A stretch of DNA of 64,000 nt from Oopsacas minuta. Taxonomy: Eukaryota; Animalia; Porifera. Of this stretch, positions 5,615 through 52,427 are shown piece by piece. A model generated the notes under the pieces. It ran no database searches. It saw only the letters and a program-made list of their open reading frames with translations, and was not told the DNA's origin. The DNA lies in NCBI GenBank assembly GCA_024704765.1, contig JAKMXF010000354.1:419690-483689 (forward strand). The letters are read 5' to 3'. How positions within the stretch are numbered: the first letter of the stretch is position 1; each line of letters opens with the position of its first letter. Both the position numbers and the translations under genes were made by a program.

Positions 5615-5752
5615 AATAATTATTGCTAGAAAATGTTTCCATAAAACAAAATTGATCTGTTATGGTTCATTGAGATTCTAATAACTTGTCTAATACAGTT
5701 TAAAAATAAAGCATGGAATGAATTTATACAAAAATTTCTTATATTTATAAAA

Positions 5753-6148
5753 CTAGCTAACAAATATTTGAACTCTGAGCATTAGAGTACAAGTAGTACA
5801 TGGTATAATGAGCTCTTCATCTACTCCTGTGACATCATCTGCTTCCAGTACATACTCCCCTCCACATCTACATGGATATGTGTAACCCTCCCCCGTCTCT
5901 AAACATTCCATATCACTTATTTTGATAGTTTCTTGACAAGCAGCATGAGGTGTCTGTAACTGTCTGTCTATGATAGATTTCTTAATTGGATCAATCAGTA
6001 TCTCATAAGCTTGTTGTATTTCTAAGAAGTTCGTAGATTTTGGGTATTTATCAGGGTGAGATCGTAATACCAGCTGTTTGTAAGCTCTCTTAACACGGTC
6101 TGTATCTGATAATATAGAAATACCAAGTACATGGTAAGGATTAGACAT
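5753..6148 (-). CDS. DNAJC24: Diphthamide biosynthesis protein DPH4 (J domain plus CSL zinc finger)
   Basis: NPYHVLG...HPDK J domain; YPCRCGG...CTTC CSL finger. ATG 6148 preferred over the upstream non-ATG ORF start; CTCTATTCTAG acceptor 1 nt upstream. Confidence 0.92.
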   Translation of the reverse strand: MSNPYHVLGISILSDTDRVKRAYKQLVLRSHPDKYPKSTNFLEIQQAYEILIDPIKKSIIDRQLQTPHAACQETIKISDMECLETGEGYTYPCRCGGEYVLEADDVTGVDEELIIPCTTCTLMLRVQIFVS

Positions 6149-6325
6149 GCTAGAATAGAGATACATACAGCTCAATTAAACTGATGGAGACTTATATGAT
6201 AATTTAATGATATTTGTATTACAAAATTTTATCTAGAATGCTATGGCAACAAATTAAAGTTGCAATACGAATATCCTAATTTCACTGAGATCTCCTATAA
6301 TGTACTACAGCACTAACTAATATAT
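6149..6325 (-). promoter_or_regulatory. Short spacer between RPS26 and DPH4 carrying the RPS26 3' end and ending in the DPH4 acceptor-like AG
   Basis: 177-nt AT-rich spacer; AATAAA at the RPS26 stop; acceptor-like TATGTATCTCTATTCTAG directly before cATG. Confidence 0.55.
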
Positions 6326-6745
6326 TTATTGTTTTGTCTGTCCCTGCACACGCTGGGTGTTTGGGCCTGTAGACTGTGAGAATTGACCCCCGGTCCCTGG
6401 GGCTGCAGGATTGGGTCTGGGGAGGTCGTCTCTCTTGGGTCTGAAACGAGGAGGAGGATTTCTGTCTCTGCGAGCCTCTTTGGATCTGTTCCTCACTACT
6501 TTTGAGTGAATAGCACAACTAACACAGTAACATTGCTTTATGTACATTTTGGGTAGACTGTAAGATTCGTATACACTTTGATCTGTAATATCCCTAACAG
6601 CTGCAGCTTCTACTATGTTACGTATTGTGAACTTTTTGATAGCTTTATCTTTAGGGACACACCTAGCACAATTGGTACAACGTACGAAGCGGACATGACC
6701 CCTCCCATGCTTATTGCGGCCGTTATTTCTTCTCTTCTGAGTCAT
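6326..6745 (-). CDS. RPS26: 40S ribosomal protein S26 (eS26), intronless
   Basis: [51 protein letters not shown]; AATAAA overlaps the stop codon. Confidence 0.98.
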
Positions 6746-6945
6746 ATGTTGAATCAATTATCTAAAACTCGCAGGGATAATAGTAATACTTACAAAAATG
6801 AATACATTTCACTTTTACACATAATCTATGGCAATAATTATAGTATCAAATATTGTAATATTAATACTATGTACTGAATATACAGATGAATACTATATAC
6901 AATATTATGTGAAAAGAATACACAATATGTTAGTTAGTGTATGAG

Positions 6946-9114
6946 CTACAATACAACTTGTTGTCTATGCTTCTTAAGACAATACATAGAGCAGTATAAA
7001 TAGCTAGATTTCTCAAAATAGCTATCTCCTTGTAACCCATGCATACACTGTGCACACTTGTCACCTGATGTGACAGCTGATGACATGAATCGTTTCTCAG
7101 CAGCTAGAGCTCTCTTTTCTCTCTCACTCAGTACTTTACATACTTCCCCTTCTTCTTGTTTCCCTGTGTTCTTTCTTTGTTTCTTAGCAGAACCCTTAGA
7201 TTTCTTCTTTTCAACTTTCCTCCTCCTCTGCTCCTCTTCCATCTCAGGAGAGAGAGGAGATGAGATTTTAGCATCTGAGTAGTTGTAAGCTAAAGGGTGT
7301 GAGAACATGAATCTACGAAAAGCATCTCTACTAGGTTTATCACGAGCTCTCTCGTACGGAACTTTTCCTTGCTTGTCCTTAACAGTAGGATCAGCTCCAT
7401 ATCTTAAGAAGTGGAATATGAGAGGAGAGAATCCTTTGTGTGCGGCTAGATGTAGAGGGGTGTATCCTTCTGAATTAGTCATCTGTAAGACTCTTCTCTT
7501 CTCTGTATCTAGGAAATCATCCCATATCCTAATAGTTATACTCTCAATGCTATCTTCCAGGGTATTAGGGGTATACTCGCTCTGTATCATAGAGGGATTA
7601 TCTTCTTGGGGCTCTGGGATATTATCTTCGATGACGTCAGTATCCTCTATAACAGAGTTAATTGGATCTTCTAATACTACCCAGTCCTCATCAGAACCAG
7701 ATTCAACAGCTGATTTCTCCATAGATACAGTATCTATTACTTCAGGGGACTCTACAGGCTCTGGAAATGAGAGGGGGTCTCCTATCTGAGCGAGGAGGGA
7801 GAGTACTTTAGGAGTTTCACACTTTCCACACGCCTCCATCAGCTGTTCGAAGAACTGCTCAAAAGGGTCCAAAATTTCAATATTTGATTTTTTGCTTTTC
7901 TTGGCTCTACGAGATTTTTTCGGTTTCTTCTCGCACTTAGTCTCCTTCTCCATATTCCTCTCTACAACCTCAACATCTAGAGCATCAAACAGATCCTTAA
8001 CTATATGACGGTTAGGAGGACTGGTCCCAGTATGATCCACCATAGTGACGTCATCATCCTCAGCTGTGAAGTCGTCTAACGTTCCATGCACGAACATGCT
8101 AGTCATAAGAGCATGTATCCTCTTAACCTCAGTGAATGTAGGTCTTCTGGTATTGACAGGGACAGGTCGCACACGTGAATCATCTTTAAAGAATCCAAAG
8201 TTCTCTCCCTCTGCATAGAACGTCTGTCTGCTGTATACAGGAATGCGTATGAAGATGACGTCACACTTACTAAGTTTGTCACTCCAGCTCCGTAACAGCT
8301 CTTGTATATCCTTAATGAGAGCTGCTTCATTAGCTCTACGAATCTGAGCTCCCATGGAGCGAGCGAAGCTAGACTTATCCTGAGTGGATTGGATAGTTCC
8401 TCCCTTAGCGCGGACTACGTACCGATGGAATGTTTTATGACAAAGAATAGTTTCCCCGTGGAAAATTGCTCCGGCAAAATGTCCGGCAGATTGCATCAGG
8501 ACAGCAACACGTGTTCTCTCAGGCACGAGGGAGATACTGCGTAACAGCTGGTTGAGGGTATCAGGAGTATGTGCGGGGTGATGCACTAACTCTCTATACA
8601 CAGAGCATACTGTATTATCTATATTACAATATAGCATTAGTTTGGGAGGAGATTTAGTGATGGTATCCTGGTCGTCATCAGAACTGTCAGAACCAGAAAT
8701 ACTGGAAATATCCTGAGATAGGAGGAGGTTAAATTCCTGCTCCTCGACCTGTTTCTTACCAGCAAGTTGTAGACGTAGATTGTAACGATGCCAATCATCT
8801 TTGTAATGTTCCAGCATTTCTTCTCTTGAGCTGAATTTGACGTCACAGAGAGAGCAAGATAGTGTGTTTAAATTAGGGGCTGGTTTATCAGGAACTGGGG
8901 GTGTGATAAGGGGGCTAAGCGATGCGAGGGCGGAGTGGGTAGATTCGATAATTTGTCTGTTAGAGAGGACATCTTTGAGGAAGTGTGTCTCACAAAGTTT
9001 CTGCTGACCTAGCTTTGAAAATACAGACAGCACAGGATTTAGTATAGTGTGTTTGTCCTGAGGCAGAGCTAGGTTTAGATGGACGGGAGCTTTAGTATCA
9101 AGTTTTGTAGCCAT
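6946..9114 (-). CDS. ANKZF1: ANKZF1/Vms1 ribosome-quality-control tRNA endonuclease
   Basis: C2H2 finger (CSLC...HYKDDWHRYNL); VLRF1 domain (AGHFAGAIF, KTFHRYVVRAKGGTIQS with the catalytic Gln); ankyrin repeat (GYTPLHLAA); coiled coil; C-terminal treble clef (CAQC...YCSMYC). First ATG at 9114; intronless. Confidence 0.95.
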   Translation of the reverse strand: MATKLDTKAPVHLNLALPQDKHTILNPVLSVFSKLGQQKLCETHFLKDVLSNRQIIESTHSALASLSPLITPPVPDKPAPNLNTLSCSLCDVKFSSREEMLEHYKDDWHRYNLRLQLAGKKQVEEQEFNLLLSQDISSISGSDSSDDDQDTITKSPPKLMLYCNIDNTVCSVYRELVHHPAHTPDTLNQLLRSISLVPERTRVAVLMQSAGHFAGAIFHGETILCHKTFHRYVVRAKGGTIQSTQDKSSFARSMGAQIRRANEAALIKDIQELLRSWSDKLSKCDVIFIRIPVYSRQTFYAEGENFGFFKDDSRVRPVPVNTRRPTFTEVKRIHALMTSMFVHGTLDDFTAEDDDVTMVDHTGTSPPNRHIVKDLFDALDVEVVERNMEKETKCEKKPKKSRRAKKSKKSNIEILDPFEQFFEQLMEACGKCETPKVLSLLAQIGDPLSFPEPVESPEVIDTVSMEKSAVESGSDEDWVVLEDPINSVIEDTDVIEDNIPEPQEDNPSMIQSEYTPNTLEDSIESITIRIWDDFLDTEKRRVLQMTNSEGYTPLHLAAHKGFSPLIFHFLRYGADPTVKDKQGKVPYERARDKPSRDAFRRFMFSHPLAYNYSDAKISSPLSPEMEEEQRRRKVEKKKSKGSAKKQRKNTGKQEEGEVCKVLSEREKRALAAEKRFMSSAVTSGDKCAQCMHGLQGDSYFEKSSYLYCSMYCLKKHRQQVVL

Positions 9115-9723: not shown

Positions 9724-12700
9724 TTATTTTGATTTTGAGGCTGATTGATCACAGATTTTGGAGCCTAATGAAATTAGGTTTCTGATGTACTTAAGGAATG
9801 ATATCGCTTCTCTGTCAGTAGTCCTATCATTCAATACATTAAGTATTAGTATGTCTGTAGGGAACATAAAATTGAGGGTGACTGGCTTAGCTTTTCCCTC
9901 TGTGTCTGTGAACAGAGTGTCGATTACAGGAACTTCGGCTATGTCTAGGTATATAGATCCAGCGTAATCATCTTGAGAGAGCCTGTCCCAATCCCATAGA
10001 GATAGCCGTACAACTTTAGAGTGACTACGGAATCGGTCCAAAGATATTTCAACTGAAAATTCTTCATTGAAGAGAGCAGATAATGTTCTTTTGTGATGTT
10101 TTGTTTTAATCGTCCTCATCTCATTGGGATCAGGCAAGAGATTCACTGTTATATAAGGATCACATGTTCCATGATACGAATCCATTCGAGGAAAGTTCTC
10201 TCCACGGAGAATTGAAATATTCAGCGTTCCTCTACCTTTTTGGTAGTACACACTGAAAGTTAAACTGCCGTACTTATTGGCTATTTTTGTATTCGCTTTG
10301 GCTAGCTCACAGTAATATTTATTCACCAATTCCTTCGTTTCAAGACTGTATAGTTTGAAATAATTCTGAAGAATTTCAAACTCAAATGAACACAGTTGTT
10401 CTTCACTCAATCCATCTCCACTCCCATAGAAAAACTGATACAGAACTTCTAGGCTAAGATATAGACGTTTATACTGGCCCTCTGTCCTCATTTTATTGTC
10501 CTTGTACTCGATTAATATCTTTATGACTCTCAGCCATAATTCATTCAGTAACACACTGAAATGTTCCTGACACAGAGTATCACAAGAAGACTGTATATTG
10601 CTAACTAACCACTGCATTAATGGATCAACAGCAAGTTCAAACTCTATATCGTAATTTTGTGTCAGAAAATTGTGGAAAATCTCGCGAAATTGCCGTTCGA
10701 AATAATTCCCGAGCAGGATAAGCATCTTAGATTCACAATGCTTAACATCTTCAATAGAATCATCTAATACTCTCTGTAGAGTATCGACTGGTGACTGTTC
10801 AGATCCTTCAAATTCCTTGCTGATTGACGCCCAGTTAAGTCTGTTAGGTATTTCCTTAAGATGATGCTGAGTTAGATAAGCATTGTTCAATAACATACAA
10901 GCATTCTCATCTATGACAAATTTCTTCTTAGCTTCTAATCCATCTTTTATAGTTTTTCCTAGTTTCTCTAATAACAGATGTGCGAAGTGTTTAGCTATAT
11001 CTCCTCCAACTAATGTAAGCTTAATAACAAAATTAAATGTATCCTCTTTAACAGGCCATTGTAACCTCTCATAGAAATGGTAACACTGTTCAAAGCATAG
11101 AGCTGTGTCTACAGCCGATGACGTCACTTTGATGTTACTATGTGTACCATACACTTGACCTGAGTCGTATTCAACTAATCGCTGGAGAGATGCAGTTGCA
11201 ATGGATTTGGTTACTTCCATCCAAGTGAGTACACATGGTTTGAACCACATGTACAACTTCTGGAGACACCATCCATCAACAGGGGTGTGTTTGGTGTAGG
11301 AACTAAAGTTCAGGACATCTCTCACTCCCTGATAGAGACGGAAAATGACAAGTGCTCCTTTCGACTTCTCGGCTATCTCTTTCTTAATATCTTCCCCATC
11401 TTTGCCTGAAACTAGAAAATGCTCTTTTGAGTCAAAGGTCTTGAAGAATTCCTCAATTTCCATAGCTAGCATAGAGTCCAGTTTCTGGAATGCAACATCG
11501 AAGTACACAATACCTATCTTCTTGAATGGTTTCTGATACCCAGCCCAGCTGTTTGCTAGATACTGAGCAGCTGAGTAGCATACGTCAGAGAGAGTAGCAG
11601 CTTGATCAAGATCCTGATTGGTTAGAGTGAGAGGCTGTGCTTTCGCAAATTCCAGATGTTTCCATGTTTCAATATCTTTAAGAATTCTCTCCTTCAGGAT
11701 ATCAGCAAGAGACAGTTCGTCTGACAATCTCCTAGTGAACTTTAAGAATTTAAACACCTGAGTAAGAGATTTCAGAACAGCTGATAAATGAGCTATAGAT
11801 CGGGAACAAGTATTAGGAAATACATTGCTAGTTCTCTCCAGCAGCGTTAACTCATGTTCGTAGATAGAGTATAAGTGTGCTATAGTATCCTGTACACATT
11901 GCATTGGGATAATTTCTAACTGTTCTTGCCATAGAGATGTTAGTACAAGAGTTGTCATACACAGTTCATCACGCTCGTATGTATACTTAGTGATATATTT
12001 CGCGAGGAGAGGCAGTCTAGCTATGGTAGACTCAAACTCACTCATAACTAGAAGTTCTTGTATTGCGATAGATATTGACAGAAATGGTTCAGGTAGTCTA
12101 CCATTTAAGAAAGGATTATTCTTCTGAGTACTGTGTCTAGCTGATTCTAGTAGAAACTTCTCCAGTAGCTCAGCTCCATGTCTACCCTTTCTGTATGCAG
12201 AGAGGAGAGATTCTACTAATCGCACTTGAAAACTGAATGTTAAGTGGATTTTACCGCGGTAGCTTTTACCGGAATGAGATCTAAGCTCGTGCCAGGTACT
12301 TTTAGGAAATGTGGTGTCGAATGTAGTCAAATCTACCACACATCTCCCAACAAATTCATCCTTTATTTTAACTTTTGCCCCTTTCCCTGGTTCTCCGCTA
12401 GAGTCCCATACTTCAACAAGTAACAGCTGATCTGACTTCAATTCAAACTCAAAATCCTCTTTCCAAACAGGCTCTAAGTTCCTATGGCTGATATGGCTCA
12501 CTTGTATCGGAGAGTTCTTAGAAACTAGGTCTGATAATTTGCCTCTAGAATTCCTATCTAAAGTATCCCGGGATACTAGTCCTAACTTGCAATAAGGGTT
12601 TGCTCTCTCACTTGAATCTGATAAGGGTAGCTCAGTAGCTGCCTCAAGGGAGACAGATAAGGTGTGATTGAAGAGACACTCTGTTTCTGCTTCCTTTCTC

Positions 12701-13286
12701 CAGGCTATCACATCTGTCTTACTTATCTCTAGCATGTTCTCTATAGCTCTTTTACTTTCTTTTAAGTACTCATCCTAAACAGCGAATTATATATCAATAA
12801 ATACATACTCAAATCCGAATTTAAATATTCTTAAAGTTGTATATATTAACTCACATCATATCCAGGTACATTTCTAGCATTTTGAATTATTTTTTTCTTG
12901 TCAGTAGAATAATAGTAGAGAGACTGTAGAGCTAACTTGTGGATTCTTTGTTTATCTCTATTGTGTAGTGAACATCCCTCTGCCTCGCCAGGAGCAGCAG
13001 CCATGTGGATTGAAGCAGAGGAAAGGGAAACGTCACTAGAGCCTGTGACCAACTTAGCTGCTTCTTCAAAGTAGTTGTTAGGCTGTGAGAACATGTCTGG
13101 TATAGTTATGAGTCCTCCTAGTTGTCCTGTAGCCTCCTGCTCCTTCATATTACTGGTACTATCCTTATTAAGGGTAAGTTTTGAAAATTTATCTTTTATT
13201 TTGAGACTAGTCTTGGAGAATGAAGTGTAACTACTGGGGTTCTTCCGGGTTCTTCTCTTCTCAATGTCTGCTGGCTTATCCGCCAT
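9724..13286 (-). CDS. BAIAP3: Munc13-4/BAIAP3-family C2A-MUN-C2B vesicle priming protein
   Basis: Exon 1 13286-12855 (alternative ATG 13340), 80-nt GT-AG intron 12854-12775, exon 2 12774-9724 in frame. C2A (NPYCKLG, EPVWKEDFEF, VEVWD), long helical MUN region (SSAVDTALCF, CMLLNN), C2B (CDPYITV, SLWDWDRLSQDDYAG). BAIAP3 versus UNC13D not resolvable. Confidence 0.88.
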
Positions 13287-14012
13287 CTTCTTGCTAGATC
13301 TAAAGGATAGTTTGGAGCAAGTTCTTTTAAATGTATACATTTTGTAAACGAATGTATTTTTGTATGAATTTACAAGTTTAAATACAAAATTACTGTAAAT
13401 TTGTCAAATAATCATTATGTAAGGCTGAAAGAAAAGGAGCATTGTGTGATAATAAATATTAAATCATGCTCTAAATATGCTGAATGGTATTAGTTAAGGT
13501 CACGATTAACTTCGTAAACAAAAAAAAGTTATTTGCATACATCCCATATAATGCAAATGATTCAATATAACATAAATATTTCAAAAGTGATACTTTTGAG
13601 TCTGTAAGTAAGTCACAGAGAATGAAAACAATGAATTAAGCATTCATCACCATTTATGCCAGATGGTGACTACTGAGAAAGATAATATTGATTGCTCAAA
13701 CGGGACAGCATAGGTGAAAACTAAATCACATCCAAAATAGATTAAATTAACAACTTGATTAGTCAGTTTGAAATAATTTACAAGTACAATCAACAACCGC
13801 CAGTTCGCCATAATAAAAAGTATAATAATGTGTTGACAAAAAATAGTTTGTACTATCAAGGAATTTTCTGGATACCCAATGAATCAGACCAGCTGTATGC
13901 ACTAAATATTAAAATATTTATGATTCTAGAGTTACTTTATATCAGAAGATATATACTTTAGGTAGAGAATACAGATTCTGGATACTTTGTGCAAACACTG
14001 ACAACAAATACA

Positions 14013-16838
14013 TTACTTCTTAGCATTCAATGCCGCGTTAATGTTCTCATCTAATCTGAGAATAGTAGGATCGTCTCTGGAGTAGACTCCAGTCTGTAAC
14101 AAGATATTCCTCTGCTCCACCCATCTAGCAATCTTAGACTCCAACTCATTTTTAGTAGTATTCTCTCTCATTGAACCACTCAGACTCAGAGATTCTACTG
14201 TCTCTGCTTTAGCTCCATTATCTGCTCTATAACTCCCTCCCATGTGCTGTGTAGCAGTTTGAAGGTGTTCTAGCTCTTGTTTAGTTTTCTGTAGTTCCTG
14301 AGCAATCCCTTGTGTCTCTTCTCTCTGCATGTAAGCGTGTCTTAACTGCTCCAATTCCTGTTGTTCCTGCTTTAACTTAGCTTGACTAACTGCATACTCT
14401 TGTTGTCTCATCTTAGCTAATTCCTGCAGAGCTCTCCCCCATTGCTGTCTATACTGCTGTTTAGCTTGTAATGCTTGAGAGAGTTGTTGTTCTAGTTTTA
14501 CTCTTTCTGCTTCTACTACTGTTAATTCTGCTTGTAGTTTGGCTTCAGGCTTTGTACGACTCTCTTCCATTACACGCTGAAGCTCAGTCTCTCGCTGTCT
14601 CAAACGACGCTCTATCTCTTCCAATCTTTCTTGTAGTGTTTTAATCTTCTCTTCACTCAGAACTAGTCTACCTTTATCTATGGATAACTTTTGTTCGTAT
14701 TCAGCGCTTACCTCCCGTCTCAAGCTTATCTTCTCTCCCTCCCATCTCTCCAGCTGTAAGGATAGAGTCTGTTCTCTTCTGATCAGCTCCTGATCTCTGA
14801 GGTCTAACTCCCTTCCTCTCTCTCTCACCTCTTCCAATCCGTTTCTTAACTCAGTCTGTAGTTCATCATACTGATGAGACTTATTCTCTAGCTCTTCCCT
14901 CTTACCAGCTTCCTGTCTGCTCCATTCCTCAGCTAGTCTCTGCAGGAGTTCTGTCTCTTTGTATTTAAGCTTATCTCTAAACTGAGATTCCTCTCTCTCC
15001 TTCCACATCTCCATCTGTAGTGCTTCTTTATACTCTTCTGAAGCTAGCACCCTTTCTAGGGGTGCAGGGGCTGGAGGGGGCGGCTCGATAACCTGAGGGA
15101 TTGGAACAGGCTCAACAGGTGTTCGGGGGGGTAACTGCATCTGGGGTGTAGGCTGATGAATAGGTGAATGTGTCGGATTGACAGTGACAGGAGCAAGTGA
15201 TAAGTTGATCTGTAATTCTGCTACAGTGCCAGATCTAGAGAGGAGAGGAGAACTCATAGAATGAGAGAAATTATGAGCAGATACAGCATGAGAGAATACT
15301 GATGATAGAAGTACAGTAGAGGTAGCTATAGGTTGAGACTGTGAGTAGAGTTGTATCTGTAATGGCTCTGTCTGGGTGTGTTCCATTAGCAGTGAGAGAG
15401 GAGTACTGAGATCGAATAAGCAGCAAGAACTATGGATGCGTTGAGGATGGGAGAGAGGGAGGGAGTGTGGGAGAGGGATCTCTATAGGTTGTGTGAGAGA
15501 GAAGAACTGATAGAGATAGTGTAGGGAGTAGGAACCAGAAGGTGGGAGTGATAAGTTAGTGATTGTAGGGATGTCTATTGTGAAGCAAAACGTCAAGTTC
15601 TCCTCTGACTGTGTAGGAAGGACAGATAAAGGGGGAGGGGCAATAGTTTCAGGAGATAGAACGAGGGGAGAGGGAGGATCAGGTGGGAGATGTAAGTCAT
15701 CCAGGTCTGGGAATGGAGGCGGAGGAACAGGAAATGTTTCTGGTCTCTCCGTGTCAATAGGTAGAGGATGCTCTGGAGAAGATTCAATCCTAAGAGAAGC
15801 TGAAACACTGAGACTAATTAGCTGTTCGTTGAGAGCCGTGCTATCAGCCTGTTGAGGGAGAAGACGAATGTGTTTCTCAATGTGGGTGGGTAAGGACTCC
15901 TGGGATCTCATGAGACTACTGGAGAGTTCAGATAGAGACATCTCCCCTTTACCTATACGGTGTTCTTCTGAGAGGAGTGTGAGTGAAACTGGACTGTGAC
16001 CGGTTAGTAAGAGGTGTAAACTTTCGCGAGTTGAAAGTATTCTCATGGTTATCCTCTCCGGTTTGAAGGAAGTAGAAGCTGATGAGCTACACATATCAGC
16101 TAGTTGATCTGCCATCTCGCTCTCAGCTCCAAGAGTGAGAGAGAACGTCTCTGATTGGATCTGAGAACCCAGTAGTGAGTAGATCAGCTGTAGAGTTGCA
16201 TCTGAATGTGAAGAGCCGTATACTGGATAGTTCTGTGGATTTAGTACAGTTTGTATTGTGAATGTCAATGCGAAAAGAAGTTTATCTAATCCTATATCTT
16301 CTCTCTCCTCTTCTACGATGAAGTATCCGTGTTTTGGATCCAGGGTAATCTTAGGTAGCCTGGTTTGGGACGGCACCTGTGGAATGGAGTGATCGGGTTG
16401 ATTGAGAGGAGACGGAGAGTCATTTTCTGCGATTGTAGCAGACTCTTGAGTGAGTAACACGAATATCTCAGGTTTGAGACGTGGATAAGATACATTCAGT
16501 AGTCTAATCCAGTGACCTTTAGCAGGACGCTGTTGAGCAGTACGAAGGTCTAACAACAGGTAACCTATATTCTCCTTAGTCTTAGTACGATTATCCATAG
16601 CACATAATATAAGTTTTAGAGGAGTACGATGCAAGCGGTGCTGCTGTAATTGCTTATGAGAAATTTCCCAACACAGCTCTGTGTTGATGTGAGGGGAAGT
16701 GAGATGAGGTACAGGGTCGGTAGAGAGAGACTTACCAGAAAAAGTGCTCTCAACAACCAAACTGTGTCCAGGTCTAGGGGGGAAGTAGCGGCCTTCTGAG
16801 ATACCCACTACAAGCAGCTTATCCTCTCCTGACGTCAT
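14013..16838 (-). CDS. CEP120: Centrosomal protein CEP120, intronless
   Basis: N-terminal C2 matches CEP120 (VVGISEGRYFPPRP, LSTDPVPH, ELCWEI, HRLHRTPLKL, IGYLLLDLRTAQ); further C2-like segments, Pro-rich linkers, C-terminal coiled coil (EYKEALQMEMWKE, LLQTGVYSRDDP). Confidence 0.95.
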   Translation of the reverse strand: MTSGEDKLLVVGISEGRYFPPRPGHSLVVESTFSGKSLSTDPVPHLTSPHINTELCWEISHKQLQQHRLHRTPLKLILCAMDNRTKTKENIGYLLLDLRTAQQRPAKGHWIRLLNVSYPRLKPEIFVLLTQESATIAENDSPSPLNQPDHSIPQVPSQTRLPKITLDPKHGYFIVEEEREDIGLDKLLFALTFTIQTVLNPQNYPVYGSSHSDATLQLIYSLLGSQIQSETFSLTLGAESEMADQLADMCSSSASTSFKPERITMRILSTRESLHLLLTGHSPVSLTLLSEEHRIGKGEMSLSELSSSLMRSQESLPTHIEKHIRLLPQQADSTALNEQLISLSVSASLRIESSPEHPLPIDTERPETFPVPPPPFPDLDDLHLPPDPPSPLVLSPETIAPPPLSVLPTQSEENLTFCFTIDIPTITNLSLPPSGSYSLHYLYQFFSLTQPIEIPLPHSLPLSHPQRIHSSCCLFDLSTPLSLLMEHTQTEPLQIQLYSQSQPIATSTVLLSSVFSHAVSAHNFSHSMSSPLLSRSGTVAELQINLSLAPVTVNPTHSPIHQPTPQMQLPPRTPVEPVPIPQVIEPPPPAPAPLERVLASEEYKEALQMEMWKEREESQFRDKLKYKETELLQRLAEEWSRQEAGKREELENKSHQYDELQTELRNGLEEVRERGRELDLRDQELIRREQTLSLQLERWEGEKISLRREVSAEYEQKLSIDKGRLVLSEEKIKTLQERLEEIERRLRQRETELQRVMEESRTKPEAKLQAELTVVEAERVKLEQQLSQALQAKQQYRQQWGRALQELAKMRQQEYAVSQAKLKQEQQELEQLRHAYMQREETQGIAQELQKTKQELEHLQTATQHMGGSYRADNGAKAETVESLSLSGSMRENTTKNELESKIARWVEQRNILLQTGVYSRDDPTILRLDENINAALNAKK

Positions 16839-44372: not shown

Positions 44373-45080
44373 TTTTCAACAGATTTGGAATATATTCGAT
44401 ATAATCAGCTTAAAATACACGAGTTTGTATACCTATCAATAATTGCGTCTATATTTGTCTATTTGAGTTTATATATACCTTGATCTGCAGTCCTATCTTA
44501 TGGAACTTTATACGGTCTCCTTTTGGACTCTGATCTAATTACCAGAGTTCAGATACGTGATTACATTGACTGTATGTATGTATTATAAAATATATATTCA
44601 CAGGAGTCTGTAATTGATATCTAGCAATATAGATTATCAACTTATACTATTATGAAAATATCAATTGTATTGTAGAAGAAATAGTCACTACGTAAAGTGT
44701 TGGTCATTGATACCCTTTTTAGAGGTATTTACTGTGTCTAAGGTTAATTGATTTGTTACATTCCTTATGACGTCCTGGAATGAGTATAAGGATATGAATC
44801 CAAAACCATTTAAATTACTTCTTGTACTAAAAAGCTAGGTTATTGTTACATCCCGAATATTGTCATTAAAAAATATTCCTGACATATTCATGCTTCTTGA
44901 TTTCATTTTATGCCAAAATCATGTTCATCTACGTCAAAATTCAGATTCGTGCCAATGGCGAAATCTATAAACTTTGTTCTTGATCTGGCAACACTGTAAT
45001 ATATCATGGCCACAGAGGTTCTCCCTAATATAATGCTTATCAAACAATCTGTACGTTTATACCGAATTAGTAGGTACACC

Positions 45081-46154
45081 ATGGGTAATTATTTCAATTC
45101 AAATACTAATACAACAAGACCTGAACCTATACAAACTAATACTCCCCCGCAAGAACCTATAAAACCTCAAGCTAGCTCGTTTAGTATGAGAGAACCTCTG
45201 CTCTTCTCTCTTCTAGCAAACTATGATCGAATTCTGCTAGCTGGTTGCGGGGGAGGGTATGACTTTATGAGTGGACTCCCACTCTATTTTGCACTAAAAG
45301 AATTAGGCAAGAAACCCTTCCTTGCTAATTTATCATTTACTACGCTAAACGATGTTAAACGTCTAAATCCGGATGACGTCATTTTGAATTGCGGATTTCG
45401 AGTTCATTATAAAACAAAGGTAGCTAGCAATAGATACTTTCCCGAGCTATTCACCTGTCAGTGGTTCCGTAAGAAGGGAGAAGATGTTGAAATATTTGCA
45501 TTTGATCACTTCCCTGCTACCAGGGATCTTATAGACTGTTACCAGTGGATTTGTAAAGAGAGAGGAATAGATGCTATAGTATTAGTAGATGGTGGGACAG
45601 ATAGTCTCACTTATGGGGATGAGTGTGGGATGGGAACTCCTGTGGAAGACCACACCAGCATGGCTGCTATAGATATGGTAGATGGGATAGGGCTTAAACT
45701 GCTCTGTTGTATTGGATTTGGAGTAGATTCATTTCATGGAATAAGCCATGGATTATTCCTACAAAATGTAGCAAGAGCAGAGAAGCAAGGACATTTCTAT
45801 GGATCATTCTCTGTATCGAGACATACTCCTGAAGCTCGTCAGTACATAGAGTGCTATGAGTATGTAGCTGCTAGAATGCAACCTTCCATTGTATGCTCTT
45901 CAATCATTAGTGGGATTAATGGAGAGTTTGGGAACCATCACTCCACAGAGAGAACTAAAAGCTCTACTCTATTCATTAATCACTTAATGTGTATTCTATG
46001 GACATTTGACTTACAAGGCGTTAACAAGAATATCCCGTACCTGGATAAAGTTAAACAATCTACCGGCGCTCTGGAAACTGATTCTATAATTACTTCATAT
46101 CGATCTAAAATTGGAGATGATAAAATACGACAGCCATTGCCATTACCAATGTGA
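45081..46154 (+). CDS. DUF1152-family protein of bacterial/archaeal type
   Basis: FSMREP, ILLAGCGGGYD, LANLSF, YFPE, DAIVLVDGGTDSL, GTPVED, IGFGVDSFHG, PSIV, TERT..LFINHLM are the DUF1152 motifs as I recall them. Start set at ATG 45081 (MGNYF), after AATTAG/TAG acceptor-like sites. Confidence 0.85.
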   Translation: MGNYFNSNTNTTRPEPIQTNTPPQEPIKPQASSFSMREPLLFSLLANYDRILLAGCGGGYDFMSGLPLYFALKELGKKPFLANLSFTTLNDVKRLNPDDVILNCGFRVHYKTKVASNRYFPELFTCQWFRKKGEDVEIFAFDHFPATRDLIDCYQWICKERGIDAIVLVDGGTDSLTYGDECGMGTPVEDHTSMAAIDMVDGIGLKLLCCIGFGVDSFHGISHGLFLQNVARAEKQGHFYGSFSVSRHTPEARQYIECYEYVAARMQPSIVCSSIISGINGEFGNHHSTERTKSSTLFINHLMCILWTFDLQGVNKNIPYLDKVKQSTGALETDSIITSYRSKIGDDKIRQPLPLPM

Positions 46155-47081: not shown

Positions 47082-50000
47082 TTAGTATACATTATCTCTA
47101 GGGTATGTAAAATTATTGCTTAAATCGTCGTTAATAGTTCCCTTTCTCTCTGCTCTCATCTGCATTACCTTGAATTCCTCACTACTCTGACACTCCCACA
47201 AAATTAGAGCGTTTTGCTCCCTATCACTTTCCTCTCCGCTTGTAACCTCATTCAATACAATTGATACTGCTAGATAGTACGAGTAGGCATGTCCATAAGA
47301 TAGAATTAGAGCTTTCTCAGATCGTGTAGCACCGTTTCCTAGAATCGGGACAAGATGGAGAACTGGCCCTCTGTATGGTGTAACACAGGTTTTGAATGTT
47401 TTATGAATTGCAGACAGTACTACTATGATCCCATTTGATAAACCTATCCATATTGTATCAAGCTCAGAGCACATGCTTGTTATTTCGATATTGTTCACAC
47501 CTTTCAACTGATAGAACCTTTTGCTTATTCGTTCGAAATCAACATCCATTTTCCATTTTCGCAGTCCTGTGTCGAACACGGATACAAGCGGCTCACATTG
47601 ATGTGAGAGCCACACTTCATCTCTGTAGCTAGTTAGCATCATTATTCTGAAACGTGAATTGTAATGAGATAAAGGGTAGCTAATGCTAGTTGCTAAACTG
47701 TAATCATCATAGATGTATACTTTATATCCGCTGGTACACCATTGTTGATCGTTGATGATGAGGAGAGTATCTATTGGACTCAAGTCAATAAAAATTAAAT
47801 GTATTTCCAATTCTCCGCGTTGAATAGCATCTCTATTCTTTAAGAAACGAATTATGACTCCATCTTTGCTCGCTGCATATACATACTTGTCATGCTCAAT
47901 TAGCTGTGCTGATTCACAGGTTGTAGGTAGCAGCTCCTTGTGTATCATTATATACTCTTCATTCTGTATTTCCCAAACAGCAACGAAGAAGTCTCCGTAC
48001 TGTGTACGCTTGTTGATAGTCCAAACATGTTCATTGAATATGTTAACACAATGGACCTCATGGTTAGACTCGATCATAGAAATCAACTTTAGAGTAAATC
48101 TACATCTAAACTGAATACAATTCTTCCCGTTTTCATCTTTTAAAACATAACATATGCTATTTTCACTGTAGCTAATGAAAGGTATGTCTTGTCCCTTTAT
48201 TATTCTTTCTACACACATTATTGATTGGAAAGTAGGCTGAGATATCAGCTCTACAATACTCCTAGCATTTGGTCTCACTTTCGGATCTTCATCCCAACTG
48301 AGACGAATAATATTCTCTAGAAAACACAATCCAAAATTCAGTAATTCTATTGACAGAGATGGTCTTACATTATCTATAACTAGCGAGTCAATGTAAATGC
48401 TATCTACATTGTTGTATGGTAGACTACCACTGACAATATTGTACATTAACATCCCGTATGAGAATATATCTACTCGGTGGTCGTAGTATACTTTACCCCC
48501 GTACTTTAGGATTTCTGGCGCCTGAAATCCTTTCGTTCCCTCGAGGCCCACGTAGCCAGATGGCTGGAGGTATGCAGCTATTCCAAAGTCAGTTAGTTTT
48601 ACTTGCACCTGTTCGAGAGGGTCGATAGACACAACAAGAACATTACTTGGTTTTAAATCTCTAAATATTATCGGATGAGGTCTTGTATGTAAGAAATCCA
48701 ATCCTAATGCTACCTGTATTGCTATGAGGTAATACAGCTGTCTTGCGAAGGGAGCCCGACCTTCATCCCCGCTCTTCTTGAGAAGGTCGCAGAGTGAACC
48801 CATGGGAGCAATTTCAAGAACTAGACTCATTTGTGGTTTTATTAATATCCCAACGAAACCAATCAAACATGGATGATATAAGTTCTTCAATACCATAGAT
48901 TCACGTCTCAATTCGCAGAGAGCTTCATTCTTACTCTCTGGACTATTCCGAGTTTGGTGATATGTTTTTATAGCTACTGATTTTCCTTTATATTTACCAA
49001 CGAATACTGATCCATACCCTCCTTTCCCAAGAGTTTTCTCAAAGTCGAACTCAAAATGTTCTGCGTTTAATACGAACTTCTTTGGCAGATCTAGTAGCAA
49101 TAGGTCAGGCGCTAATTCTTCTATTCCGTATTCTTTACCTAGAACATTAATGGGTGTATTAGGATTCTCAAACCAACTATAAATTGAAGGTAGAGTCAGA
49201 TTTATTTTGTTTAAATCCATTCTCGTATGTACTACTTCTTCACTGAGGAGGAAAGTCTCTAGCTGTACACCTGGGTACCATGAATTACACAGATCGAGTA
49301 GAGTATCGCATATTAGTCCAAACTTGCTACAACCCTCTCCTTCCTTTGAGCACATTATGAGGACACCTTGTTTCTGACAAGACACTAGATTAGAACTCTT
49401 CAGTGATTCTACGAGAAATGTAAGTTCTTTATCATCGTAGAATAATCCTTGTCTCCATACCTTTAGCACAATCGGGTTGCTATTACTGTATAGATTCCGT
49501 GTTTGTGTTAGAATAGTAGTTATCGGGCTCTTTAAGCTATTTTGTATGCTACAAGTTGGAGCTATGATCTCTATATTACACCAACCATCTCTCTCTATCA
49601 TGTCTGCTACACCTCTTTTGATGTAGTGTATGTGTTGCTGTAATTCTTGGATGTTGTGTAATAATCTGGATAAGAACCTAGACCAGAACCCATAAGGAAC
49701 CAAATCAACCCCTAGAACAACACGAGCGTAAAATGGATTGGATATCAAGTTAGAAAATATTTCAGTACTAGGTCGCTCTGTAGGTAGTAACGAAGGAATC
49801 AGTAACACACTTTTTCCTATGTTTAATCCTACCTCAAACTTCTCCAGCAGATGTAAGTAACAATCAAAGTATTCTGATGGAAATTCGGTGCTCTGACCTT
49901 TAAACAAATTGTAGAAATGTCTAACCTCCATCAATCCGTTGGAGACGAATGGATTCTTTGTTTTGATTGTAATAATATTCGCCATCATATTGCATAGCCA

Positions 50001-52427
50001 TTGAGGATTAACAAATACCAGTTCATTCAGTCCACTATTCGGATCGTCATAATAGAGGAGTTTTCCTGCTTTGTGAAGGAAATTAATCGCTTTCATAGTT
50101 TCACCCTTCCCAACAAGATCTGATATTGACCAAGTTTCAATAGTTTTCTGGAAATCCTTTAGAGTTAGGATAGGAGATTTTTTCTGCTTTCTGAGATCCT
50201 TATTCAATGCAGTTATCTTCTTATCAAGAGTTATGTAGTATTGCGGAACTTTGATCCCGAATATATTATCATCACATTTGCTAGAACTTTGTGATTTAAT
50301 TTTAAGAGCTGTTTGATGGATCACTTCCTTCAGCTCGAATATAAATTCCATTTTTGATGGCAAACAGCTGACACACATAATCTTTTCAATATTCAGAGTA
50401 CGATATTTGTGTACATTTTCAGCTAACAATTCCAATAATTTCCCAGCCTCTTCCCTGTCCGACAACATGTCAAGGTGTGTAGCTACAATTATTAGTGTTG
50501 TTCTAGGTGTCCTGGCTTTAATGTTATCTAACCAAGGTAGCAATTCTTTTATCCCATCCTCACCATGAGTGAGATTCCATACCAGCAAATACAGAGAGCC
50601 TTGACTCAAAAAGCATTGATGCGCAGCGTAATACTCTTCTTGTCCTCCAAAATCCCACATAATGTAGTTGATACTTTTCTTGGTCAATAAACGAGATGGA
50701 TAACTCCATTCACTCATCTCTATACCCACAGTGGAAATGTTGATGTCATCTTTGTTGTCTTTAAGTCTTCTCACGAGTGTAGATTTTCCTCTGTTCTGCT
50801 TGCCTACTACGTATATTTTGAGCTTATTAAACTCTTGAGAATTTTGATATTTGTGTTTGTAATGTTGTATCAATACGCTGCTTACTATTTTCTTGTTGAG
50901 TGGATCATATGCATTCTTTGGAAAATCTGCTCTATTCAATTCTGGTAAACCGTCTAGCCCCAGAATTATTAACTTTTCTAATTTGCCCAAACTCAACGGT
51001 AAAGTGAATATCCCCATATTATAACTGATGTCTAGGAAATAGAGTGTCGTCATGTTGGTAACACAGTCAGGCAGTCTATTCAGTTTGTTATAGGATAAGT
51101 TTAAAGTTTGTACATTTGGGAGGATGAGGCCATCTGGTAGGATGAATATTTTGTTTCCAGATAAGTTTAATTTTCTGAGTGCATTCGTAGCAATAGCAGG
51201 ACGTAAGGTCGTGAGAGAGTTCTCTGATAAATCTAGTTCTTCGAGGCTTGCTAGAGAACTCAGGATCAGTGGGTTTATGTAATCAATTTTATTTCTATTC
51301 AAGATCAATTTTACTAGGTTTTGGCAGGTGCATATGTTTTCATTGAGCTTTTTTAACTGGTTTGTACCTAGGTGTAGTTCTTCTACCCAAGCCACCTTTT
51401 GCAATACATTAACTTCTAATTCTTCTATCTTTAATCCCTCCCAGCATATTTTCTTTGTTTTCGAATTACAGTCTATGTTCAATAACAATTCTAGTACTGC
51501 TGCGCTGTTCCGCTTCTTCCTAGCTAGCATCATTGGTATAATCCTGTCGATATCTGAGGTTATATGTGGTAGACATTTCTGTAGTAACATTTCTTCTTTT
51601 ACAGAAATACTGCTTCCAAGACTGGATGTTAGAGACCTGCAAGAGAATTCAATCTTATTCATATCTGAATTAAGAATGCAACGGATCACTTGTATTTTGT
51701 TTTCAGAGGCAGCTAAACAGAGAAATAGATAAGCTACGATTTCCATATTCCCTCTCATATCAGCTCTCTCTATTAACTCGCTATAGCTATGATCTATTGA
51801 GAAAAGAAGGATCTTCCTCATATGTCTGATTTTAGAGCTATCCACACAATCTAACAGGCACTGATTGTAATCTTCAGGTAGTATAGGATTTGGTTTGTAT
51901 CTACTAGCATTGATAAGTACATTATTGATTTCTTCTGTGTCTTTCCCTTTGCAAGCACGTTTCAATTGCTCCCCCATTAGGAGATTTATTATTTTGGTAC
52001 TCTTCCTCTCTACTGCAAGATCCAGTGGAGTTCTGTTGTAATTATCTTTAACATCTATTTTAGCACCGTTTTTTATTAGAATCTTAACGCATGCGTAATG
52101 TCTCTGCACCGTAGCAAGATGTAAGGGTGTATACTTGTTACTACAGCGTACATCAGGATCCGCTCCCTCTTTCAGGAGCAATTTTGTGATATCATAATGT
52201 CCCCCTACACAGGATTCGTGTAGAGGGGTGTATCCGAATACTCCGGTCCCATATTTTAAGTAAGATTGTAGATTTAAACCTTCGCTGATTAGATCTATAA
52301 TTTCAAAGTATTTACCTTCACGACACCAGCGATGTAGTTTCCCTTTATCAAATGTTTTAGAAAAGCGAGCCTGTATGTAACAATCTTTCTGTTTACCACT
52401 TTCTTGAGCTTCTGAGGAAGTCGACAT
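47082..52427 (-). CDS. LRRK-type Roco protein (ANK-LRR-Roc-COR-kinase-WD40-like), single 5.3-kb exon
   Basis: Ankyrins (YTPLH twice); LRRs; Roc P-loop GKQNRGKST and WDFGGQEEYY; COR (NPQWLC, GFWSRF); kinase LGKGGYGSV, VAIK, IFRDLKPSN, DFG, APE; beta-rich C-terminus. Confidence 0.93.
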   Translation of the reverse strand: MSTSSEAQESGKQKDCYIQARFSKTFDKGKLHRWCREGKYFEIIDLISEGLNLQSYLKYGTGVFGYTPLHESCVGGHYDITKLLLKEGADPDVRCSNKYTPLHLATVQRHYACVKILIKNGAKIDVKDNYNRTPLDLAVERKSTKIINLLMGEQLKRACKGKDTEEINNVLINASRYKPNPILPEDYNQCLLDCVDSSKIRHMRKILLFSIDHSYSELIERADMRGNMEIVAYLFLCLAASENKIQVIRCILNSDMNKIEFSCRSLTSSLGSSISVKEEMLLQKCLPHITSDIDRIIPMMLARKKRNSAAVLELLLNIDCNSKTKKICWEGLKIEELEVNVLQKVAWVEELHLGTNQLKKLNENICTCQNLVKLILNRNKIDYINPLILSSLASLEELDLSENSLTTLRPAIATNALRKLNLSGNKIFILPDGLILPNVQTLNLSYNKLNRLPDCVTNMTTLYFLDISYNMGIFTLPLSLGKLEKLIILGLDGLPELNRADFPKNAYDPLNKKIVSSVLIQHYKHKYQNSQEFNKLKIYVVGKQNRGKSTLVRRLKDNKDDINISTVGIEMSEWSYPSRLLTKKSINYIMWDFGGQEEYYAAHQCFLSQGSLYLLVWNLTHGEDGIKELLPWLDNIKARTPRTTLIIVATHLDMLSDREEAGKLLELLAENVHKYRTLNIEKIMCVSCLPSKMEFIFELKEVIHQTALKIKSQSSSKCDDNIFGIKVPQYYITLDKKITALNKDLRKQKKSPILTLKDFQKTIETWSISDLVGKGETMKAINFLHKAGKLLYYDDPNSGLNELVFVNPQWLCNMMANIITIKTKNPFVSNGLMEVRHFYNLFKGQSTEFPSEYFDCYLHLLEKFEVGLNIGKSVLLIPSLLPTERPSTEIFSNLISNPFYARVVLGVDLVPYGFWSRFLSRLLHNIQELQQHIHYIKRGVADMIERDGWCNIEIIAPTCSIQNSLKSPITTILTQTRNLYSNSNPIVLKVWRQGLFYDDKELTFLVESLKSSNLVSCQKQGVLIMCSKEGEGCSKFGLICDTLLDLCNSWYPGVQLETFLLSEEVVHTRMDLNKINLTLPSIYSWFENPNTPINVLGKEYGIEELAPDLLLLDLPKKFVLNAEHFEFDFEKTLGKGGYGSVFVGKYKGKSVAIKTYHQTRNSPESKNEALCELRRESMVLKNLYHPCLIGFVGILIKPQMSLVLEIAPMGSLCDLLKKSGDEGRAPFARQLYYLIAIQVALGLDFLHTRPHPIIFRDLKPSNVLVVSIDPLEQVQVKLTDFGIAAYLQPSGYVGLEGTKGFQAPEILKYGGKVYYDHRVDIFSYGMLMYNIVSGSLPYNNVDSIYIDSLVIDNVRPSLSIELLNFGLCFLENIIRLSWDEDPKVRPNARSIVELISQPTFQSIMCVERIIKGQDIPFISYSENSICYVLKDENGKNCIQFRCRFTLKLISMIESNHEVHCVNIFNEHVWTINKRTQYGDFFVAVWEIQNEEYIMIHKELLPTTCESAQLIEHDKYVYAASKDGVIIRFLKNRDAIQRGELEIHLIFIDLSPIDTLLIINDQQWCTSGYKVYIYDDYSLATSISYPLSHYNSRFRIMMLTSYRDEVWLSHQCEPLVSVFDTGLRKWKMDVDFERISKRFYQLKGVNNIEITSMCSELDTIWIGLSNGIIVVLSAIHKTFKTCVTPYRGPVLHLVPILGNGATRSEKALILSYGHAYSYYLAVSIVLNEVTSGEESDREQNALILWECQSSEEFKVMQMRAERKGTINDDLSNNFTYPRDNVY

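Follow-up and report, generated by a model that had tools for sequence, protein, structure and literature searches.

How does a gene of the DUF1152 family, whose members are mostly bacterial and archaeal, come to lie among eukaryotic genes in the genome of a sponge? The question is raised by a 64,000-nucleotide stretch of Oopsacas minuta DNA (assembly GCA_024704765.1, contig JAKMXF010000354.1, positions 419,690 to 483,689; hereafter the window), in which an uninterrupted open reading frame (ORF) at 45081-46154 (+) encodes a DUF1152 protein of 357 amino acids (aa). We find that the gene is genuine and nuclear, present as a single copy without introns in a glass sponge. Its presence is most economically explained by horizontal transfer, and we consider it likely that one acquisition from a bacterium related to a Bacteroidota-type group of DUF1152 carriers was followed by domestication in sponges.

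Genomic setting and integrity of the gene

The published O. minuta genome comprises 365 scaffolds, ~61 Mb and 36% G+C (PMC10280926), and the window gene has one 100% match in it (365 contigs, 61,460,524 bases). The gene lies on a 1.1-Mb contig, flanked by a gene for a transient receptor potential (TRP) channel with ankyrin repeats (ANK), by TFIIIC subunit 6 (TFIIIC6) and by an LRRK-type ROCO kinase; the TRP neighbour is an ankyrin-repeat exon on the minus strand. Its G+C content (GC) of 0.397, with 0.307 at third codon positions (GC3), stands beside values of 0.37-0.41 for the neighbours, its relative codon usage correlates with theirs (r = 0.85), and the surrounding intergenic regions are eukaryote-like. 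An earlier, sequence-only reading of the window had described an intronless gene with host-like composition between clearly eukaryotic genes, and all three points are borne out.

That reading had also named a chimeric assembly with symbiont DNA as what would overturn it; the order of the locus instead recurs in an independent assembly. The closest homologue (P0002, 77% identity) sits on a 1.94-Mb contig of another glass sponge (locus L001), where FA2H, TRP, ankyrin, DUF1152, TFIIIC6 and ROCO kinase genes follow one another as in the window. Orthologues in related glass sponges are 68-77% identical to the window protein, and the ORF is intact in 7/7 loci read. Between L001 and the window gene the proportions of nonsynonymous and synonymous differences are 0.11 (pN) and 0.72 (pS), corresponding to a rate ratio (dN/dS) of 0.048, a value that points to strong purifying selection; two demosponge-type DUF1152 loci compared with each other give 0.086.

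The reading frame extends upstream of the start used here: the mechanically defined ORF spans 45006-46154 (+) and encodes 382 aa. The ATG at 45081 is preferred because related glass-sponge proteins begin or align exactly there, because nothing in the orthologous protein corresponds to the 25 upstream codons, because DNA similarity to L001 begins at this ATG with none upstream, and because its context (acaccATGg) is Kozak-like and better than that of the earlier ATG. The upstream stretch is probably a non-coding 5′ untranslated region, as judged from these comparisons.

The neighbourhood has features of its own. The ROCO kinase gene (window 47082-52427, -) encodes 1781 aa with an ANK-LRR-Roc-COR-kinase-WD40 architecture in one uninterrupted ORF, and its L001 orthologue has 1762 aa. 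L001 carries the ANK-TRP gene twice, at 3186-7350 (-) and 12227-15881 (+), as an inverted pair around DUF1152; in the window the upstream one, lying between FA2H and DUF1152, is the sole copy.

Membership in the DUF1152 family

The 357-aa product matches the Pfam DUF1152 profile (PF06626) with 46.2 bits (E 4.9e-12, gathering cut-off 27), and a six-frame search of the genome with the same profile gives 41.1 bits. Of the 295 profile positions, this match spans only 91-274. The end-to-end likeness claimed in the sequence-only reading is established not by the partial Pfam match but by alignments to bacterial members, which extend from query residues ~33-41 to 355-357 at 37-48% identity in blastp and tblastn; most of the 80 best bacterial loci are colinear with the window protein over this range.

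An alignment of 59 sponge and bacterial sequences contains 32 invariant columns, and the window protein has the conserved residue in every one. The GGG.D, DGG.D and E-D motifs singled out from the window alone are invariant or nearly so across this set, and three conserved blocks are listed in Table 1. A SIS domain (PF01380) was considered and rejected: although the protein as a whole scores 28.8 bits, none of its stretches passes individually, orthologues P0002-P0004 lack a SIS match, and the hit was judged idiosyncratic.

A sponge clade of DUF1152 proteins

A word search for relatives returned 2072 matches, and organism names were read among the 120 best. The only named eukaryotes there are two sponges, Amphimedon queenslandica (A0A1X7U3E1) and Dysidea avara (XP_065909664.1, on a 39-Mb chromosome), and no named non-sponge eukaryote occurs among the 111 closest clusters. 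In a tree of 200 rows, a sponge clade of 113 rows (111 listed matches, the window protein and one genome record labelled as bacterial) has a support of 100 and a stem of 0.41, with the remaining bacterial sequences all outside it; later trees recover the clade at 99-100. Since it contains both glass sponges and demosponges, the gene must be old and is not a recent acquisition of the window genome.

Gene context is eukaryotic at 6/6 sponge-clade loci read. Four demosponge-type loci have a DUF1152-GLMP neighbourhood in common, three of them also with Frag1-type ORFs, and one demosponge-type locus contains tetraspanin and HECT genes. In the basal subgroup of the clade (P0109 and relatives) DUF1152 lies among SDHAF4, DUF2039 and SAM-domain genes, and a member of its cluster is on a 9-Mb contig. 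This subgroup branches first, followed by the glass sponges, then the Dysidea group, then the Amphimedon group with a large remainder, an order that mirrors accepted sponge relationships as far as two names allow.

Two further observations concern records within this clade. In the basal eukaryotic subgroup, 6 kb separate DUF1152 from SDHAF4 (L090 1521-1817, +), and in two demosponge-type assemblies the SDHAF4 (P0220, P0244) and DUF1152 matches are on contigs of equal size (2,413,751 and 688,276 bp), which hints that the two genes may long have been linked. Separately, a 530,680-bp record filed as 'MAG: Stappiaceae bacterium ... chromosome: 10', MAG standing for metagenome-assembled genome (OZ219961.1; loci L010/L008), encodes a DUF1152 protein of the sponge clade, N-terminally extended and ending in Leu-Pro-Met (LPM), with a GLMP-like ORF downstream as in the demosponge-type loci. 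Its GC is 0.41-0.44, its ORFs are short and sparse, and the record looks like host DNA of a sponge under a bacterial name.

Bacterial relatives and the candidate donor

A scan of genomes, one per species, found at least 600 matching stretches, at least 556 of them encoding relatives. The best 80 of these at least 556 relatives show 36-44% identity and fall into 13 named phyla, among them Actinomycetota, Myxococcota, Bacteroidota, Planctomycetota, Acidobacteriota, Verrucomicrobiota, Chloroflexota, Cyanobacteriota and Armatimonadota. One relative, P0120, is in a verifiably bacterial context, adjoining a DAC/YbbR pair. Occurrence is sporadic: DUF1152 is present in 5/121 relatives of one Saprospiraceae carrier, and PF06626 matches only 1/14 control genomes, that of the archaeon Sulfolobus. 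The sequence-only description of the family as prokaryotic thus holds for most members, which are bacterial or archaeal, but a partial protist sequence and a subfamily from contigs binned as giant viruses also belong to it.

Trees of a 64-row set, all unrooted and without an archaeal outgroup, address the donor. They separate the sponge proteins together with a Bacteroidota-type group, consisting of Cytophagales, Saprospiraceae and Flavobacteriaceae records and a low-GC contig labelled Thalassovita, from the other bacteria. The split has a Shimodaira-Hasegawa-like approximate likelihood-ratio (SH-aLRT) value of 97 in an LG+C20 quick tree, an ultrafast bootstrap (UFBoot) value of 99 under LG+F+G4 and of 98 under Dayhoff-6 recoding, and an SH-aLRT value of 90 when 14 Bacteroidota-type rows are included. 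Its persistence under recoding argues against a pure low-GC artefact. The Thalassovita contig (PBYL01000030.1, L013, 'MAG: Thalassovita sp.') has a GC of 0.34, and its DUF1152 falls within the clade of the Bacteroidota type; mis-binning or a transfer between bacteria is the probable cause.

We propose a single acquisition from a bacterium, older than the split between glass sponges and demosponges and possibly older than the divergence of all sponge classes, with a donor probably related to the Bacteroidota-type group. After acquisition the gene would have adopted host composition, gained a short N-terminal extension that varies between lineages and come under strong purifying selection. Because the trees are unrooted, the direction from bacterium to sponge is inferred from the broad prokaryotic spread of the family set against one tight eukaryotic clade. 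Horizontal transfer, as the sequence-only reading proposed it, therefore stands in the sense that a bacterial-type gene has been integrated and domesticated in an animal, but the event is ancient and concerns many sponges, and its direction is drawn from distribution and unrooted trees. Where the same reading had looked to phylogeny for nesting within bacteria, the unrooted trees group the sponge clade with the Bacteroidota type.

Several observations weigh against this account. Nesting within bacteria is not demonstrated by unrooted trees, and the support for sponge plus Bacteroidota type falls to 62 when giant-virus-type rows are included under Dayhoff-6. Named organisms make up only 2 of the ~111 clade members, and the basal subgroup is placed among eukaryotes by its gene context. 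The LPM end typical of the sponge proteins recurs in proteins of Armatimonadota, Abditibacteriota and Chloroflexota type, not in those of Bacteroidota type. DUF1152 homologues also occur on two giant-virus-binned IMG/VR contigs (L091 4995-5885 and L092 4845-5674), and 49 relatives of the L091 copy form a divergent subfamily on AT-rich contigs that are giant-virus-binned or similar. Finally, a partial EukProt protein (P0319, UN03539, 209 aa) is a bona fide DUF1152 with its motifs intact.

On balance we give the favoured explanation as a whole, which combines a sponge gene, a bacterial origin and the enzyme mechanism outlined below, moderate confidence, better than even. A stronger version of the transfer, with a single uptake in the sponge stem from a Bacteroidota-like donor and retention in every class for more than half a billion years, is a speculation that we regard as rather doubtful; if true, DUF1152 would mark the Porifera at the molecular level and give access to a metabolic or signalling reaction not yet described. 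In this version the sponge gene and the giant-virus-binned subfamily might share an entry into eukaryotes.

Alternative origins

The giant-virus-binned and protist copies bear directly on two of the alternatives. The DGGTD motif is missing from the divergent L091 copy, and in L092 the copy is divided between two ORFs, which were treated as separate pieces. Their subfamily has a stem of 0.93 and a deviant amino-acid composition; it is sister to the sponge clade with a support of 76 in FastTree and an SH-aLRT value of 85 in the LG+C20 quick tree, and it moves away from the sponges under Dayhoff-6 recoding. These sequences were dropped as an outgroup, their position shifting with the model. The 21 kb around L091 have a GC of 24-27% and contain kinase, Atg3-like, NFACT, RabGAP, IlvD and AAA genes, while hallmark genes of viruses are absent from the 21 kb read; given these cellular-type genes and the missing hallmark, the viral origin of the giant-virus-binned contigs is unproven. 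Cellular-type neighbours of the giant-virus-binned copies (L091, L092, L108) also include RFC and an RNB exonuclease. The EukProt protein is 36% identical to the window protein, has its best match (47%) in a Verrucomicrobia protein and lies outside the sponge clade; either the protist acquired it independently, or bacterial sequence was carried over into the transcriptome. So far, to judge from the sequences, neither kind of copy appears to show a eukaryotic lineage shared with sponges.

Vertical descent, with DUF1152 present in an early eukaryote or opisthokont, inherited by sponges and lost nearly everywhere else, would agree with the monophyly and long stem of the sponge clade, with a midpoint root that sets sponges and Bacteroidota type opposite the other bacteria, and with the existence of the EukProt sequence and of an eukaryote-associated, giant-virus-type subfamily that some trees make sister to sponges. 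We nevertheless think it improbable. That sister relation vanishes on recoding, the EukProt protein is closest to a bacterial one, and identity between sponges and bacteria (40-48%) is as high as that between sponge classes (45-52%); named non-sponge eukaryotes are missing from the 111 closest clusters, and many independent losses would be needed.

Less probable still is a detour through a giant virus or protist that had itself taken the gene from bacteria. The two IMG/VR contigs, the 49-member subfamily and its grouping with sponges in two of the trees are what such an intermediate might leave behind, yet the long stem and aberrant composition of the subfamily, the loss of the grouping on recoding, the missing DGGTD motif of the L091 copy, the split of the L092 copy and the cellular character of the DNA around L091 all speak against it.

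An origin in sponges followed by spread to bacteria is compatible with an unrooted tree, in which the root could be placed on the sponge stem, but it is very improbable, as the 80 best bacterial relatives span 13 phyla, the Pfam model matches an archaeal control and bacterial diversity is far deeper than that of the sponge proteins. Contamination, with symbiont DNA joined to sponge DNA, might come to mind for animals rich in bacteria, a mainly bacterial family and a 'Stappiaceae MAG' record that carries a copy, but the gene order repeated in an independent assembly effectively excludes it, as do the host-like codon use and GC, the eukaryote-like intergenic regions and Kozak start context, the location of orthologues on a Dysidea chromosome of 39 Mb and on a contig of 9 Mb, and the sponge-like character of the 'Stappiaceae' contig itself (GC, GLMP neighbour, sparse ORFs).

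Predicted structure and possible function

We know of no solved structure and no characterised member of the DUF1152 family. An AlphaFold model computed with the 59-sequence alignment has a predicted local distance difference test score (pLDDT) of 92.5 and a predicted template-modelling score (pTM) of 0.89, with only residues 1-30 disordered; strands and helices alternate in it to give an alpha/beta fold. Foldseek comparison of the model with the PDB yields generic Rossmann-type matches only, at template-modelling (TM) scores of at most 0.33. In an exhaustive structural search the top seven matches are LmbE/PIG-L-like hydrolases (3dfi Dbv21, 3we7, 5bmo, 2ixd, 5cgz GalB, 1uan and 1q7t MshB) with Z 9.4-11.2, the next match having 7.3; 177-200 residues align at a root-mean-square deviation of 4-5.5 Å and 6-10% identity. 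By the model, DUF1152 would resemble these enzymes in its Rossmann-like sheet and in the placement of functional loops after strand 1 and the central strand.

From these features we propose that DUF1152 is a compact alpha/beta Rossmann-like enzyme with its active site at the C-terminal edge of the parallel sheet. The site would be formed by the G-x-G-G-G-x-D loop after strand 1, the D-G-G-T-D-S loop after strand 5 and the invariant acidic and histidine residues E122, E181, E189, D190, D216, H219 and H223. Two glycine-rich loops would suit a phosphate or nucleotide-like group, and the acidic and histidine cluster would suit a divalent metal and acid-base catalysis, so that the enzyme might carry out a hydrolytic or group-transfer step on a phosphate-bearing or nucleotide-like small molecule with the help of a divalent metal. 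This mechanism, drawn from a predicted model, is put forward tentatively; the broader suggestion of the sequence-only reading, a metal- or nucleotide-dependent enzyme, is a reasonable guess.

The comparison also supplies the main points against a function of this kind. The PIG-L proteins compared carry AHPDDE, PHPDDQ or AHPDDV after strand 1, where DUF1152 has A-G-C-G-G-G-Y-D, so the LmbE/PIG-L zinc motif is absent and glycines stand in its place. A profile comparison of the family alignment with nine PIG-L sequences shows no similarity (hhalign probability 0.5%), and membership in the LmbE/PIG-L superfamily is rejected on these two grounds. Nor are the bacterial gene neighbourhoods of DUF1152 conserved, the local neighbours being a short-chain dehydrogenase/reductase (SDR), a Ser/Thr kinase and an ADP-ribosylglycohydrolase. 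Searches of NCBIfam, PADLOC (defence systems), PDB sequences and the ESM Atlas give no match beyond the DUF1152 family itself.

Protein termini and feature coordinates

The N-terminal extension of about 33 aa noted in the sequence-only reading is real: 54 residues precede the G.GGGYD motif in the window protein versus 19-21 in bacterial proteins. N-myristoylation sites follow a pattern (PROSITE PS00008) with a Met-Gly start and a small residue at position 6. The window protein and three relatives read M-G-N-Y-F-N-S and fit it, and the same reading had noted myristoylation as possible from the Met-Gly start, but the MGNYF start is found in one glass-sponge sub-lineage only, and two Met-Gly relatives (M-G-N-Y-L-K-S and M-G-N-Y-F-R-T) break the pattern with Lys or Arg where the small residue is expected. 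A second glass-sponge sub-lineage starts Met-Ala-Ser-Ser, and demosponge-type proteins start otherwise. Myristoylation of the window protein is thus a possible modification and, from the sequences compared, would be specific to its lineage. The C-termini of bacterial members vary (FPH, IPV, IPL), with LPM in a minority.

Table 1 Features of the DUF1152 gene, in window coordinates
Feature	Position	Strand	Description	Evidence
Upstream in-frame stretch	45006..45080	+	Opens at an upstream ATG, 25 codons; probably 5′ untranslated	Unconserved in protein and DNA relative to L001
Sponge DUF1152 coding sequence	45081..46154	+	Complete, intronless, 357 aa and stop	ORF, PF06626 match, orthologues
N-terminal extension	45081..45179	+	~33 aa, starts Met-Gly-Asn-Tyr, Pro/Thr/Asn/Gln-rich, predicted disordered	pLDDT 38-64 over residues 1-30
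Glycine-rich loop	45243..45263	+	G55-C-G-G-G-Y-D61 after strand 1	G55, G57-G59 and D61 nearly invariant (59 sequences); follows model strand 50-55
Loop after strand 5 and following acids	45588..45650	+	D170-G-G-T-D-S, then E181 and G185-T-P-x-E189-D190	Invariant D170, G171, G172, D174, G179, E181, G185, T186, E189, D190
Acid/histidine cluster	45714..45749	+	G212-F-G-x-D216-x-x-H219-G-x-x-H223 after strand 6	Follows strand 205-211; invariant G212, G214, D216, H219, G220, H223
C-terminal Leu-Pro-Met	46143..46151	+	LPM end	In 109/111 rows counted as sponge-clade

Significance and comparison with known systems

Neither DUF1152 nor PF06626 is mentioned in the searchable literature, and the Oopsacas genome paper (PMC10280926) does not discuss gene transfers. 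The Amphimedon and Dysidea proteins were already public under uninformative names; together with the window protein they represent an ancient, well-supported, sponge-wide domesticated gene of prokaryotic type. Most reported transfers from bacteria to sponges are species-level candidates that are hard to tell from symbiont contamination. DUF1152 stands apart from them in its integration repeated in independent assemblies, its apparent spread over sponge classes and its strong constraint. With a confident model and only a few invariant acidic, histidine and glycine-loop residues to consider, its function can be approached by experiment. If the restriction to sponges holds true, the gene would also serve as a marker for separating sponge from symbiont DNA in metagenome bins, where at least one public 'bacterial MAG' record with DUF1152 seems to be sponge DNA.

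The closest prokaryotic counterparts, the Bacteroidota-type proteins (L015, L016, L027, L032, L065), share all invariant motifs and a core of ~320 aa with the sponge protein and are colinear with it over their whole length at 40-45% identity. The sponge protein differs from them in its ~33 extra N-terminal residues, its LPM end, its host codon usage and its eukaryotic neighbours. Among animals, the Amphimedon protein ('DUF1152 domain-containing protein') and the Dysidea protein ('uncharacterized protein') belong to the clade of the window protein at 47-48% identity but lack its Met-Gly extension; relatives of the two (P0038 for the Amphimedon clade, P0047 for the Dysidea clade) were sampled in the alignments and trees, and relatives at the loci read are intronless single ORFs. 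Whereas DUF1152 adjoins GLMP and Frag1-type genes in the demosponge-type loci, its neighbours in the window are TRP and TFIIIC6. Bacterial genes in sponge genomes have been reported before (Conaco et al. 2016, PMC4784904), and DUF1152 is not named in the supplements of that study that were examined. The reported transfers are events of the same type, prokaryote-type intronless genes among host genes, but DUF1152 appears to be common to several sponge classes.

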